A stretch of DNA of 64,000 nucleotides from Selaginella moellendorffii (taxonomy: Eukaryota > Plantae > Lycopodiophyta): NCBI RefSeq assembly GCF_000143415.4, contig NW_003314281.1, positions 1,042,833-1,106,832 on the forward strand, read 5' to 3'. Below are positions 7,426 through 32,809 of this stretch, piece by piece; within the stretch, counting starts at the first letter, position 1, and each line of letters begins with the position of its first letter. Below the pieces are notes generated by a model. That model was not told the DNA's origin. It did not search any database and worked only from the letters and a program-made list of their open reading frames with translations. The position numbers and the translations under genes were made by a program.

Positions 7426-7812
7426 GAGGTTTGTATTTATTTATTTATTTCAAGAGTTCTTTAAAAGCGGCGAGACTCAGAGAATTTACAGACAATACCA
7501 ATTGGAGCTTCAGCGAACGGTGATGGGAGCTTGAACAGCAGTGAAAGACACAAGTGTATAATCCACTCTGTGGAAAGCTGAAAGTTTCTTGTTTAGGTAC
7601 CTTTGTACGTTCTAGACTCCAGTTCACTGACCACGAGAGTGTTCGCTTAGGATGTGATCCCTAAGTTTGACACTAACGGCCTTTTGGATACTGGATTCAC
7701 TAGAGCTTGAGAAAGAGCCCTCTTCAACAATATTGGTGGAGTAGCTGTCAAGACTTTTAAGAGATATAAGTCCCAAGAGCTCACCATATGTGCCATTTTG
7801 TAACTTGTTTAA

Positions 7813-26569: not shown

Positions 26570-27736
26570 TCATCCGCTTGTAACGTCAGTCTCAGTGACC
26601 GAAACACCAGTGTAAGTACCAGTCTGGGGGAAACTAAAGCTTTCGCCTGTGTCAAGCTTGACAACCATGACACCCGAGTATGGCACGTTGATCTTACCAG
26701 CGTAAGTTACTGCCTGGATGTTAACTGACGCCCCCGGTGCCAGCGTATTTCCCTCGGACCACTCGAGGTTTTTGGTGCCGGAATACTCAACCGTGTTGGT
26801 GGACTGCTCGCTCTCTTGCCACTGATAAGAGCTCTCGGTCTTGAAAATGTCGAGGATGCTGGCATTCACAGTGACGGTCTGGGAAGTGGTGAGGCCTTCG
26901 GCCTGAGACCACGAGTAGGAGATGGTCATATCTTTGCTTCCATCGAGCTTCCACTGAACAGGAACTTCACTGTTGTTGCTGCATTTCAGGGTGTCCAGTG
27001 TCTCTGGAACGATGCTTCCCAGCGCAGAGATGTTGTAGTAGCGTACGCCTTGGAGCTGGCAAGAGACCAGCGGCAGGAGAAACGCAAAGCCCCATGCGTT
27101 TACGTCGTCACCGGCATGGATGTCGGCTCCCACCAGGATCCCGGCGTAGACATTGATTACCGTCGCGCTTCCACCTTGGTAGCCATGCTGGAAAGTATTG
27201 CCGAGGCTTGTGGTAAACATGATAGCACCGGCGCGATCACCTGGTCGTCCAAAAGCACGAGCCAAGGTATAATGCATACCAAGAAGAAGTGATAGAGCAA
27301 GCTTACCAACGTAATCCCATTCGCCAAGCCAGAGGGACATGGACGTGATGAGCTCCCCGGGCTGGAAAGTGTAGGTGTACGAGCTTCCAGCGGGGCTGCC
27401 GTAGAGGTGGCCTTCATTGTCCGTCTCACCCGTCTCCCACAACTTGACAGCTTTGGTTTTGTTACCGTCGTCCCACACTTGGATCTGGCGGATGACCTTC
27501 CCGCTAGTCCAGGCTTCAAGCTGATAGTCGGTGCCACCCGAGGTGTTTCCCACAACTTGGACGGTGCCAATGACGGGGCTGGAGAGCGTAGGAGCTAGAG
27601 ATTGAGCAAAAGGATGAATGCAAGGGAGTTCTAGGAGAGATGCTTTGGTGATGATGGTCTAGAATGGACCTAGATTTATATTGTCCTCGACTTAGTGTTT
27701 GAATCAACCATCGCTGGATTGTTGATCATACTCCAT
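26570..27736 (-). CDS. Jacalin-like lectin + aerolysin-type beta-pore-forming protein (natterin-like/Dln1 type), copy A
   Basis: N-terminal IRQIQVW, YTFQPGELITSMSLW, GADIHAGDDVNAWGFAF; Ser/Thr-rich aerolysin-like C-domain (YSWSQ..VTVNASI..YQW, INVPYSG, GTYTGV). 66-nt in-frame intron 27241-27306. Start uncertain (putative micro-exon ATG at 27736). Confidence 0.8.
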
Positions 27737-29312
27737 GTGCGCGTGATTCTCGATCTCTGAATGAAAGAGTTTCTTACGCTGTTGCTTTTCAACATAATCT
27801 GCATCGACAACAGGTCCTGATTATCACAGAATAAACAAACACCAGAAAACTACGTTCGTGATGAAGGCGCTGCACTAGAAAATTATGCTTAGTGTAAGGG
27901 TTGTCCCATGCATTTGATGAAATCTAGGTCATTCACGTGAACATGAAGGTAAAAAATTTGCCAGCAAGATGCAACAAGATTAAAAACATTTCTCGTTTTA
28001 ATCATGTGAAAGTTTTCTAAGAGGTTTATATGTGTTAATGTAAACGTCAACAAAATCGATGTAGATATGAGTCCTNNNNNNNNNNNNNNNNNNNNNNNNN
28101 NNNNNNNNNNNNNNNNNNNNNNNNNNNNNNNNNNNNNNNNNNNNNNNNNNNNNNNNNNNNNNNNNNNNNNNNNNNTTAACTGTCTACAGGGTTGACAATT
28201 TGGTAAGACTTTGTGCAGCAGTTTCCGATCAAGGGATGAGGCCGGAAAAGATTATCTGGAACGCAAACTAGACGGACATATAGGTTTCTCTTGTTAACGC
28301 GCTGCATTACAAAATTCTGACCACGAGGACTCAAATCTGCATCTGATGTTTACATTAACACATATAAACCTCTTAGAAAACTTTCACATGATTAAAACGA
28401 GATATGTTTTTAATCTTGTTGCATCTTGCTGGCAAATTTTTTACCTTCATGTTCACGTGAATGACCTAGATTTCATCAAATGCATGGGACAACCCTTACA
28501 CTAAGCATAATTTTCTAGTGCAGCGCCTTCATCACGAACGTAGTTTTCTGGTGTTTGCTTATTCTGTGATAATCAGGACCTGTTGTCGATGCAGATTATG
28601 TTGAAAAGCAACAGCGTAAGAAACTCTTTCATTCAGAGATCGAGAATCACGCGCACATGGAGTATGATCAACAATCCAGCGATGGTTGATTCAAACACTA
28701 AGTCGAGGACAATATAAATCTAGGTCCATTCTAGACCATCATCACCAAAGCATCTCTCCTAGAACTCCCTTGCATTCATCCTTTTGCTCAATCTCTAGCT
28801 CCTACACTCTCCAGCCCCGTCATTGGCACCGTCCAAGCTGTGGGAAACACCTCGGGTGGCACCGACTATCAGCTTGAAGCCTGGACTAGCGGGAAGGTCA
28901 TCCGCCAGATCCAAGTGTGGGACGACGGTAACAAAACCAAAGCTGTCAAGTTGTGGGAGACGGGTGAGACGGACAATGAAGGCCACCTCTACGGCAGCCC
29001 CGCTGGAAGCTCGTACACCTACACTTTCCAGCCCGGGGAGCTCATCACGTCCATGTCCCTCTGGCTTGGCGAATGGGATTACGTTGGTAAGCTTGCTCTA
29101 TCACTTCTTCTTGGTATGCATTATACCTTGGCTCGTGCTTTTGGACGACCAGGTGATCGCTCCGGAGCTATCATGTTTACCACAAGCCTCGGCAATACTT
29201 TCCAGCATGGATACCAAGGTGGAAGCGCGACGGTAATCAATGTCTACTCCGGAATCCTGGTGGGAGCCGACATCCGTGCCGGTGACGACGTAAACGCATG
29301 GGGCTTTGCGTT
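27081..29312. repeat. ~1 kb inverted repeat (arms 27081-28075 and 28326-29312) covering promoters and lectin domains of the two toxin genes
   Basis: Arms are near-identical reverse complements with a few substitutions and one short indel; the ORF track shows mirrored peptides on both strands. Confidence 0.95.
28076..28175. other. Assembly gap (100 N)
   Basis: Run of N. Confidence 1.
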
Positions 29313-29874
29313 CCTCAGGCCTCTTGTTTCGTGCCAGCTACTGGATGTCACGTATGGCGATCTTTCAATGGCGTCTGTTTCTCTTCAAAGTCTAGACAGC
29401 TATTCCACCAACGTTGCTGGAGACGGCTCCTTTTCAAGCTCTGAGCAGTCTAGCATCCAAAAGACCATCTCGAGCTCTTGGTCCCAGTCCGAGGGAGTCA
29501 CGTCCTCCATGGATGTTACGGTCACTGCAACGATCCCAGAGATTGGAGAAGTTGGGGACGCGGGCCCCGGAACTAAGTACGAGTGGCAGGAAAGCGAGAC
29601 ATACACGTCGCAGGCATCGATCCAGGCCGTGCAAACGCTCACCTGGTCAGTGAACTGGACTCTCGTTGCTGGACAAAGCATAAGCCTCCAGGCTCAGACC
29701 CATACGGGGTCTATCAACGTTCCATACCAGGGTACCATGGTTGTCACCGTGGTAGCGAGCGAGACAACGGGTGATCCTCCAACGTTTTCGTTTGAGACTT
29801 TCAACTTCCCACAAAGTGGGACGTACACTGGTGTGTCTGTCACTGCGATTGAAGTTCCCATCACGGTCAGCTGA
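28657..29874 (+). CDS. Jacalin-like lectin + aerolysin-type beta-pore-forming protein, copy B
   Basis: Same lectin domain as copy A; C-domain SSSWSQSEG..VTVTATIPEI..YEW, INVPYQG, GTYTGV. In-frame intron 29087-29152. Start uncertain (putative ATG 28657 with intron 28685-28798). Confidence 0.8.
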
Positions 29875-29965
29875 TTAGCAACCATCAATGGAAATATAAT
29901 GTGATAATAAGTTCAACCTTTTAATGTTATTGTTTCCGAGATGGAATGTGGTTACCCTAGCAGCT

Positions 29966-30812
29966 ATGGTTCTTGTGGGAGCGGCGCTCGAGGCTTTGGA
30001 TGCTCAAGACGCGGCGACCAAGGTACCACTTTGCTCAGATTTGCGAAGCGATTGCGTGTTTCTTGACTACTAAGTTGTAGTTGGCTTGGCTCTTGGGTCA
30101 TCCCACTTTGGTAGCCGCCGCTGATGCTTTCAAGGCATCCCCGGCGATAGAGATCAAACAGTCCAGCACTCCGCGTTTCGTGTGTGTTTTGCAAAAGGAA
30201 TTCGCGACCGCTACTCCAGAGTTTGTGGATGTAAGATTGATTTGGAAATAAGCTTGGTTGTAACTCCTTCCCTCTCTCTCTCTTTGTCTCGCAGTTTGTT
30301 GGCACAGATGATGCAACAACTTGTGTGGGAGTGGGAATCCGAGATCCCAAATCCGGACTGTAAGGATGCTCCAAGTTGGTGTGTTACGCTTCTGATGGCT
30401 TTGCAGAACAAGCATCGGGCATTTGGACTTTGCAGGCTGCGTGAAAGAAGGCCTCGCCCAAATGCTTTCTTCGCTTTTTCCGGACAAGGACACCATCCTC
30501 GAGGTGTTGTTCTTGAGTTTTTTTTCTCTTTCTATTTCCCCTGGTTTGTGAGTTGATTTCTACTGCTTGCCTTCTACACAGGTTCATATGGCTGGTGCTT
30601 ACGATGATTCCATCGACATGGAGCTTGGAGGAGATGAGATGGGACACTCTTGGCCTCTGTGCCTAGAACTTGTTGAGGAGTTGCAAGCTCTGCCTTACAA
30701 GCTGGAAATCCGGACGCTTTGCATTCTCCGGCATAACACTGTCACAAGCGATGGGGGTTATCCTTGTCCTGCTGTGAGAGGCTTCGCGGTGAGCAAAGGT
30801 TCCATAGCTTCT

Positions 30813-30847
<35 letters not shown>

Positions 30848-31436
30848 TTTATCAGTTCTCCTGGTTTCGCAGATCGAAACAAAGTCTGGACGCTGTGTTC
30901 CAGCGAGTTTTTCAGCTAACGCCAGTGGTCCGGACGAAATCATTCGAGCACTCTCGATGCTGGCGGGGCCGGCATCCAGGCTCCGGTCCCCGTATGACAC
31001 CGAGTCGGACACTTTCTCGATCAAACCATTCCAGTGGTATCAAGTCTTCTTTCACCTCCGTTTCCATCTTTTTTTCATGGTTTCTTTCTACCTTTCCAGG
31101 AGCCGAGGATGGAAAATGCTCGCAGCGCAGTCGCTAGCTCTGTCTGATGCCGAGCTACTCCAGACTCGATCAACGTCTCCACACGCAGAGGGCCCGAGCT
31201 TCGTCACCTCCATCAGAAGGTAGTGCAAGAGCTCCTTTCCTTGACATGCATCTTTACCACCTTTCAGGATGGACGCTTATATTTACAACCATCCGGACTG
31301 GGAACACGCATTTCCAAACCGAGAGAGCCGAAGGTTCGTAAGAGATCCTGGAACTGGGAGATGGATGCGAGCGGAAGACCCAAACTCAAGAAGAGCTGCG
31401 AGCACAGCCAAAGCTTTATGGGAGCTCTCGCTTTGA
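29966..31436 (+). CDS. NTAN1: Protein N-terminal asparagine amidohydrolase (N-degron pathway), multi-exon
   Basis: Spliced translation gives VLQKEFAT, FVGTDDATTCVGVGIR, SIGHLD, VHMAGAY, STSPHAEGPSF; TGA at 31434-31436. Confidence 0.9.
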
Positions 31437-31479
31437 AAACCACAGGCTCTTCGTCACCACATCCCGAGAGAGAGCTTTG

Positions 31480-32809
31480 CTACAACAGATTCTCAAGCGA
31501 GGCAATCCACGAAGTGAGTCTCGCGTTTACTTGCGCTGGTATCTCGTCGTGAGGACAGTGTCCGGCTTGGAGCTTCACGAGCGTTGCGTCGTTGTAAAGA
31601 GCTTGGATCTTGTCAGCTTTCGAAGACGGGGCCAGTGGATCCGACTCTCCCCACAGCACTAGCAGCGGACAATCCAAATCTCGCAGAAGTTTCTCCAGGG
31701 ATAAATCAGATGGCTGGAACAAGAAGCGAGAGATCATCCTGTTCCAAGAAAAAAAAGCCATTTTTTTCATAGTTTTTCATTTCTTTCCCTTCTACGAACC
31801 TGTAAAACACCTCTGCTGCGTTTGGATCCGCGGCAGGCTCGAGTATAGAATCGATAAGAAACTCGTCCACATGGCTCTTGTCTCTATACACCTGACAAAA
31901 AATACAAACCAAACTTAAAGTATGAAAGAATGGATTCTTGGTTCTTGGGCTTACGTTGTTTAGTGCTGCCTGGATTCGCGAGCGTTGATTCAGCTGCTTG
32001 AAAACAAACAGTAGCGCTTCACGCCTTGCCCAGTCTCTAGCTTTAAAAAACGCCGGCCATCCAGCCGTGTTCTTCGTTGGTTTCTCGACGATCACCTGAG
32101 CTTTTCTACTCTGGAAACGACCAGCCGGGTTTACCAAAGCCAGTGCTGCGACGAGGTCGGGATAGAGCACTGCGGTCTGGAGAGAAGTAAGCCCACCAAT
32201 GCTGTAAGCACCAAGAAACTAGAGAGTAGAAGAGAAAAACTATGAACCAAACTTACCTGTTTCCAACAATCACAGCGGGTCTCTTGACAACTTGCTTGAC
32301 GAAGTCCGCGATCTGGCGGCTCCATAGCTGTGGATCATACTCGATCAAGGCCTTGTCACTCCACCCAAATCCCAGGAGGTCCAACGCAAAAACTTCGTGA
32401 GTTTTGGCAAGCTCGGGGATGTTGTATCTTGCAGCAAGCAAAAAGTTGGAGAAAAAACACTCTCACACACAAGAAAAGAGAGCAAACCTCCAGTGATAAA
32501 CAGATGCTCCAAAGCCATGGACGAGTAGAATTGGCACTCCTTTATGGCCCTGACGAACGTAGTGAATCTTGTGCTCTTGCCACTGCCAGTAATTGTGGCC
32601 GCCCTTCTTGAGCACAAGCTCTGGAAGTTCTTACAGTAAAGTCTAAGTTCTTCCTTGGAGATCAAATACCTGGAGCACTGGAGACGAACTCTTGCTGCTT
32701 GTGTGAAGAAGAACACCTCAATCTATCTAGCCACAGCTCAGCATTGGGATGAAAGCTCAGCTAGATCCTTACCTGGATGAAACACTGCCACCGCCATCGC
32801 CATAGCCAT
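31480..32809 (-). CDS. Alpha/beta hydrolase (pheophytinase-like family), multi-exon
   Basis: ILLVHGFGASVYHWR|YNIPELA, ALDLLGFGWSDK, GNSIGG, LWGESDP, AGHCPHDE. Confidence 0.88.

Follow-up and report, generated by a model that had tools for sequence, protein, structure and literature searches.

A head-to-head pair of natterin-like genes in Selaginella moellendorffii with near-identical lectin halves, divergent pore domains and a shared start-codon deletion

From the lycophyte Selaginella moellendorffii we analysed a 64,000-nucleotide stretch of DNA (contig NW_003314281.1, positions 1,042,833 to 1,106,832; hereafter the window, whose own numbering is used throughout) that holds two genes in head-to-head orientation, each encoding a jacalin lectin followed by an aerolysin-fold pore domain. 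The two are nearly identical from their upstream regions to the end of the lectin and widely divergent beyond it, and neither has the start codon that should head the lectin. In our view the two probably form an old inverted pair of natterin-like genes, their front halves homogenised by gene conversion, and with the same start-codon deletion in both they are likely null or crippled alleles.

Layout of the palindrome on two haplotypes

A repeat search of 24000-32500 returned one long inverted repeat and no other long repeat. Its arms, 27054-28049 and 28344-29339, measure 996 nt each, are 98% complementary and lie 294 nt apart. Each arm comprises about 450 nt of upstream sequence, exon 1, an intron of 66 nt (GT..AG) and exon 2 as far as its 54th codon, and the directions of transcription of gene A (minus strand) and gene B (plus strand) diverge from the centre. 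The features of the pair are as follows.

27054-28049, no strand: left palindrome arm, the gene A side, from the upstream sequence through exon 1 and the intron to the lectin-coding part of exon 2
28050-28343, no strand: spacer separating the arms, with the assembly gap (28076-28175)
28344-29339, no strand: right palindrome arm, the gene B side
27595-27307, minus: coding frame of gene A exon 1, without start codon, first two thirds of the jacalin domain (translation; Pfam Jacalin, expectation value E 2.5e-5)
27589/27590, minus: site of the 9-bp deletion in gene A (alignment of five copies)
27306-27241, minus: gene A intron, 66 nt, GT..AG, phase 1, same sequence as the gene B intron, which is spliced in RNA
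27240-26570, minus: gene A exon 2, last 54 jacalin codons and then the A-type pore domain
about 26573-27077, minus: aerolysin-like pore domain of gene A (translation, structure matches)
26570-26572, minus: gene A stop codon
28798-29086, plus: coding frame of gene B exon 1, without start codon, jacalin (translation; Pfam Jacalin, E 1.4e-5)
28803/28804, plus: site of the 9-bp deletion in gene B (alignment of five copies)
29087-29152, plus: gene B intron, 66 nt, GT..AG, a 66-nt skip in all four RNA runs
29153-29874, plus: gene B exon 2, remainder of the jacalin domain followed by the B-type pore domain (translation)
about 29316-29871, plus: aerolysin-like pore domain of gene B
29872-29874, plus: gene B stop codon

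The assembly gap, 100 N at 28076-28175, falls within the spacer. The nearest coding bases, the first of genes A and B, are 481 nt and 623 nt away, and no reading frame is therefore interrupted. The left arm, on the gene A side, extends to the very edge of the gap, so the true centre of the palindrome may fall inside it. Both arms carry common variants that set them apart from the other haplotype, an indirect sign that the two sides of the gap belong together.

The other haplotype is represented by scaffold GL377719.1 (locus L001), which is collinear with the window at 95–97% identity and differs from it in structure. There a B-type gene stands head-to-head with an A-type gene (A2) on gap-free sequence, and the locus continues with a second copy of an amidohydrolase gene and with a unit that has no B gene, followed by another A-type gene (A1). 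In this second unit, 51-nt remnants of the inner arms flank a spacer of 286 nt, close to the 294 nt assumed for the window; this and the gap-free pair are further indirect signs that the two sides of the window gap belong together. We also observed that the remnants lie at L001 9273-9323 and 9610-9658, and that L001 1-12000 contains a duplication of about 7.4 kb spanning the amidohydrolase gene and an A-type gene.

The missing start codon and the transcripts

All three copies of L001 have an AUG in good context heading the lectin domain. Both window genes are without it, owing to an identical 9-bp deletion relative to these copies. Upstream of the exon 1 frame there is no in-frame AUG in either gene, the frame staying open for 24 codons before it meets a stop. 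The first in-frame AUG is codon 86 (29053-29055 in B, 27340-27338 in A), and a product begun there would be without more than half of the jacalin domain. It is at this AUG that RefSeq models P0001 and P0002 begin, and P0002 is identical to the gene A exon 2 product from its own internal Met onward. The shared start-codon deletion of both window genes is a new observation.

The copies on the other haplotype are damaged in other ways. Its B-type copy (L1_B) has a 4-bp deletion in exon 1 that shifts the frame, and both of its A-type copies (L1_A1 and L1_A2) have a premature stop at pore codon 160, with a further one at codon 96 in A2; an intact full-length frame is present in none of the five copies, two in the window and three in L001. 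The ratio of nonsynonymous to synonymous differences per site (pN/pS) between haplotypes is 0.16–0.6, and 0.16–0.35 for the pore domains, which points to constraint during most of the divergence of the haplotypes and makes the lesions look recent.

Transcription was assessed on contigs of four runs from four studies, compared to 28176-30700, i.e. one arm plus gene B. That the runs are RNA follows from the introns of gene B and of the neighbouring gene being spliced out. Contigs of the gene B pore domain were found without a single difference in all four, covering 29283 to 29903-29934 (the latter being the range of contig ends downstream of the stop codon), and the 66-nt intron was spliced in each. 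Letters that distinguish arm A from arm B (29248, 29253 and 29276) were recovered in two runs, at about half the summed depth in one of them (X1), and since both A- and B-specific letters occur in RNA, both genes are transcribed. They are expressed in the same samples at similar contig depth, and in X1 the contigs of the window genes are far deeper than those of the neighbouring gene.

The start of these transcripts appears to lie beyond the damaged site. In X1 a deep contig (28809-29247) begins at 28809, where it is joined to Illumina adapter. Upstream of that position this run has no deep window-type contig, which weakly suggests a main 5' end near 28809, just downstream of the deletion site. 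The first AUG past this point (28976-28978) is out of frame and has a better context than the in-frame one. As possible sources of an AUG we considered an upstream coding exon or a spliced leader; the sole RNA joint upstream of exon 1 reflects a difference in structure on the other haplotype, and what might have been a leader, the loose contig end at 28809, is Illumina adapter. A shallow RNA contig of X1, at window 28346-28805, covers the spacer and the sequence upstream of the B gene on the other haplotype before continuing into the common 5' region, so some transcription comes from within the centre of the palindrome.

Transcription of both genes is strong and their RNA is correctly spliced, but it offers no AUG for the full lectin-pore protein. 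Both are therefore most likely alleles that have recently become null or crippled, and not a working pair of toxins; full-length protein would then not be made from either.

Several observations weigh against this reading and against the history of conversion that goes with it. The 5' end comes from one Logan contig, joined to adapter, in one run, and such contigs show neither levels nor the absence of rarer, longer transcripts; a low-depth contig does cover the upstream region. Past the apparent 5' end the frame contains the near-cognate codons ATT (28822-28824) and GTG (28840-28842; good context), and non-AUG initiation giving a nearly full lectin is conceivable. The in-frame AUG at 29053 could yield a product with a truncated lectin, as annotated by RefSeq (P0002). 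The pore-domain open reading frames of A and B are intact with pN/pS below 1, and some function may persist. The 9-bp deletion has been seen in this assembly alone, continuity over the gap at 28076-28175 is supported indirectly only, and identical arms would also result from a single recent partial duplication.

Some of these points make up the case for genes that still work, as shortened or unconventionally started proteins translated from the AUG at 29053 (27340 in A), which would leave the pore module with just a third of the lectin, or from a non-AUG codon near the 5' end. Two RefSeq models (P0001 and P0002) start at this AUG, the RNA is spliced and in X1 far more deeply covered than that of the neighbour, the pore domains show the low pN/pS given above, and the GTG and ATT codons stand in frame downstream of the apparent 5' end. 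What counts against such proteins is that the out-of-frame AUG at 28976, in its better context, precedes and overlaps the in-frame one, that a product begun at 29053 has lost more than half of the jacalin profile, so that the lectin could not fold, and that on the other haplotype truncation of the A-type copies falls within the pore domain itself. We regard this alternative as rather unlikely and prefer to see null or crippled alleles here.

Probable exchange between the arms and its boundary

Sliding identity between the two genes is about 100% from 28050/28343 to about 27260/29130 and remains at 94–98% up to 27085/29305, after which it falls abruptly to 35–65% from 27075/29318. Read directly from the letters, the first mismatch past the codons for WGFAFL is at 29313 (27080 in gene A), which sets the edge at 27080/27081 in A and 29312/29313 in B. 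In the ten codons past this boundary the proteins are still similar and nearly all synonymous sites differ. The lectin parts are separated by four amino-acid differences, one in exon 1 and three in exon 2. The pore domains, aligned over 167 codons, share 45.5% of their residues; their nonsynonymous divergence (dN) is 0.53 and their proportion of synonymous differences (pS) 0.78, i.e. saturated. An original prediction, made from the letters of this DNA, had described a near-identical promoter, intron and lectin with about four amino-acid differences, an abrupt end at WGFAFL and divergent pores, and this was borne out in all details; the sliding-window comparison that had been proposed along with it gives a sharp drop at the lectin/pore boundary. 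In a spliced model from the other haplotype (P0003) the jacalin profile match also ends at WGFAFL, so that the boundary of conversion coincides with that of the domain.

Synonymous divergence (dS) between A and B rises in steps along the arm, from 0.015 in exon 1 to 0.11 in the lectin part of exon 2 and to saturation in the pore part, a pattern that suggests repeated conversion tracts of different length. The comparison among copies points the same way. Over the 696 columns common to all five, arms A and B of the window are 98.8% identical, differing at 8 sites, whereas the same arms compared across haplotypes are 96.1–97.4% identical; six substitutions and the 9-bp indel are common to both window arms against all three L001 copies. 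This closer resemblance of the arms to each other inside the window haplotype than across haplotypes implies exchange between them after the haplotypes split. The comparison thus supports arm-to-arm gene conversion within the palindrome as what underlies the shared front halves, a process that the original prediction had already put forward, beside a domain swap, for this palindrome.

In a pore-domain tree of 61 family members, A and B are sisters (support of 91 in the Shimodaira–Hasegawa-like approximate likelihood ratio test, SH-aLRT) with a path length of 1.25 between them; being sisters and yet far apart, they derive from an old duplication within the lineage. The history that we propose would begin with this old inverted duplication, giving a head-to-head pair of natterin-like genes, each with a jacalin lectin and an aerolysin-fold pore module. 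Repeated conversion from arm to arm would then have kept the inner kilobase, that is the upstream region, exon 1, the intron and the rest of the lectin, near-identical, and by stopping at the lectin/pore boundary would have let the pore domains drift to 45% identity. The 9-bp deletion most likely arose once and was copied to the other arm by the same conversion, in whichever direction and through however many events this took place.

Without ongoing conversion, one recent partial inverted duplication or domain swap could have put a promoter and lectin onto a diverged paralogue, and a single event of this kind would likewise give identical arms that end at a domain boundary. However, both haplotypes have a pair with this boundary and the arms are nonetheless closer within the window haplotype, which requires at least one exchange after the split, and the stepwise rise of dS along the arm is also against it. 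We consider a single event improbable, and repeated conversion the better account of the arms.

Ampliconic palindromes with arm-to-arm gene conversion are known from primate sex chromosomes. The present locus resembles them in its inverted arms of about 99% identity, in its short spacer, in arms that are closer within a chromosome than between homologues, and in having part of the spacer in opposite orientation in the other haplotype. It is unlike them in the short length of its arms, 1 kb, and in their ending within a gene, where two domains meet, which leaves no more than half of each gene homogenised. The segment of the spacer in question is about 50 nt long (window 28276-28327; L001 9488-9540) and is inverted between the haplotypes, which is what flipping of the spacer through recombination of one arm with the other would give.

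Family, fold and the question of a toxin pair

Searches and structure predictions were run on each exon by itself. Both genes match the Pfam jacalin family (PF01419) in exon 1 at E of about 1e-5, and the spliced model P0003 matches positions 4-135 of the 136 in the profile at E 6e-11. The products of exon 2 gave no Pfam match even at E 1, including Aerolysin (PF01117) and ETX_MTX2 (PF03318); a relative (P0008) matches ETX_MTX2 at sub-threshold level only. Among proteins of known structure (phmmer searches of PDB), gene A exon 2 matches Dln1 (4zno) at E 1.9e-16 and gene B exon 2 matches 5zu4 and 4zno at E 7e-13; over both genes the matches to these two structures range from E 2e-16 to 9e-13 and run from the last part of the lectin through the entire pore module (residues 107-328 of Dln1). 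AlphaFold (AF2) models were built from an alignment of 82 sequences and reached a predicted local distance difference test score (pLDDT) of 91 for B and 89.5 for A. With Foldseek, the predicted structure of A is closest to 5zu4 and 4zno, at template modelling (TM) scores of 0.82–0.84, and that of B to 4zno and 5zu4, at 0.79–0.80; LSL, epsilon toxin, Cry51, parasporin-2 and proaerolysin come next for these models. Membership in the aerolysin fold class is assigned because of the structure matches, there being no Pfam match, and the neighbours in the ESM Atlas are clusters that combine jacalin with ETX/aerolysin. On the strength of these sequence matches and predicted models both proteins are natterin-like, with an N-terminal jacalin domain and a C-terminal aerolysin fold. 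The Dln1/natterin-like architecture proposed in the original prediction is in this way confirmed, by sequence matches at E 1e-13 to 1e-16 and TM scores of about 0.8.

Dln1 of zebrafish (4zno/4znq) and LIP of lamprey (5zu4) have the same order of a jacalin lectin and an aerolysin-fold pore module. The proteins encoded here are 23–25% identical to them and come from plant genes with one intron, neither of which has a start codon; two sites also set them apart from most of the family. In jacalin-related lectins the last Asp of the G-x-D-I-D loop has a role in sugar binding. This residue is found in 64 of the 82 family members and is Asn (GDDVN) in all copies of the present locus. The Pro of the AGIP-type pore loop, present in 70 of the 82, is kept in B (ATIP) and lost in A (ASIL), and the tip of the pore hairpin of A is five residues shorter. 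An AGIP-type motif in the membrane-insertion loop is named in a passage of Lima et al. 2021 (PMC8402412).

The analogy to Dln1, LIP and other aerolysin-fold proteins suggests that in its ancestral state the protein probably formed glycan-directed pores in defence. To our knowledge, no activity has been established for any plant member of the jacalin-aerolysin subfamily.

The closest database proteins are aerolysin-like or jacalin-type proteins of S. moellendorffii, and a word-index protein search returned four proteins, all from this species. An exhaustive profile search extended the family to 247 relatives, among them a jacalin-type protein of Ceratopteris (P0014), fungal proteins, a protein of a Rhizobium plasmid and many unnamed metagenomic or Logan proteins. 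Neither the word-index nor the profile searches found an A/B pair in another species. The nearest relative outside the locus (L002 1449-2545, on a Logan contig of ERR14651393) has its intron at the same position and begins with an AUG followed by a hydrophobic, signal-peptide-like N-terminus, which the spikemoss copies are without. We also noted a third, distant natterin-like paralogue in S. moellendorffii (L003 5001-5934, scaffold GL377606.1; from a tblastn reading), which has a frame change between about 5755 and 5782 and a shortened lectin part; its RefSeq and JGI models differ, and it may also be damaged.

That natterin- or aerolysin-like genes occur in S. moellendorffii is already known: passages of Marchant et al. 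2022 (PMC9477723) deal with fern and lycophyte aerolysin-like genes, including a tandem array in Ceratopteris, and list S. moellendorffii, and Lima et al. 2021 (PMC8402412) has, in the part concerned, a natterin-like entry for it, i.e. the same species and the same family as studied here. Both sources put forward, in these passages, the idea of gene transfer, with which the patchy distribution of the family, including fungi and the Rhizobium plasmid, agrees. The passages of the two papers retrieved by keyword contain no mention of a head-to-head palindrome, partial conversion or lesions. Amaranthin-aerolysin chimeric lectins (Dang et al. 2017, PMC5554364) likewise combine, by their description, a lectin with an aerolysin-type domain in plants, the lectin fold there being amaranthin and not jacalin. 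A literature search on PtIP-65 and PtIP-96, insecticidal proteins of ferns and lycophytes to which the original prediction had pointed, gave no source linking these names to the jacalin-aerolysin family.

The original prediction had gone further and proposed two co-regulated toxins with one receptor specificity and two pore modules, perhaps forming a mixed pore or acting as an active/inhibitor pair. Identical upstream regions and lectins would suit such a pair, as would transcripts of A and B that occur together in the same samples with comparable contig depth and the open pore reading frames with confident aerolysin-fold models. The derived pore loop of A, with its change of Pro to Leu and its shorter tip, resembles that of a possible modulatory partner of B, which keeps the Pro. 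Of the proposed co-regulation, the joint expression stands. The picture of two working toxins finds no support: neither gene has an AUG with which the full protein could begin, and no coding exon from further upstream is spliced to them. One receptor specificity is true only formally, the usual sugar-binding Asp being Asn, and the hetero-oligomer or inhibitor pair finds no support: on the other haplotype the A-type copies are truncated by stops, the B-type copy is frameshifted and B is absent from one unit, so the pair does not seem to be kept together by selection in this genotype. With no such pair found in another species, a working toxin pair appears decidedly improbable. Still more doubtful, and very improbable, is a version in which the start-less mRNAs are translated, from a non-AUG or internal AUG codon, and A and B co-assemble as a two-component natterin-like pore of a plant, in which a single lectin head, shared and maintained by conversion, would serve two specialised pore subunits. 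An assembly artefact that placed a haplotype copy, collapsed or mis-joined, as one arm across the 100-N gap, into which the A arm runs at the palindrome centre of an assembly known to hold both haplotypes, is scarcely credible given the 8 differences between the arms with both versions present in RNA, the 3–5% by which both sides differ from the other haplotype scaffold while sharing haplotype-specific variants, and the gap-free head-to-head pair on that scaffold.

If conversion is indeed at work here, the locus is a compact natural case in which it homogenises, within a small palindrome, the promoter and one domain of two paralogues while the other domain is free to diverge, and in which, by carrying a null mutation from one arm to the other, it can also inactivate both genes together. 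It also calls for caution in the use of the annotated 'aerolysin-like' models of this reference genome, which are truncated or broken alleles; functional work should seek intact natural alleles first.

Directly 3' of gene B, at 29944-31800 on the plus strand, lies an expressed multi-exon gene resembling N-terminal asparagine amidohydrolase. Models of it on the other haplotype match Pfam N_Asn_amidohyd, five GT..AG introns are visible in RNA, and one database model wrongly joins it to the lectin gene. A Rfam scan of 25500-31000 gave no match. Some 21 kb from the pair, at 7672-7791 on the minus strand, a 41-residue fragment in a stop-broken frame shares 63% identity with the beginning of the pore domain of B type and is probably a relic of a further copy. 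The segment 8001-10000 is strongly AT-rich, with a GC fraction of 0.295 against about 0.47 around it.

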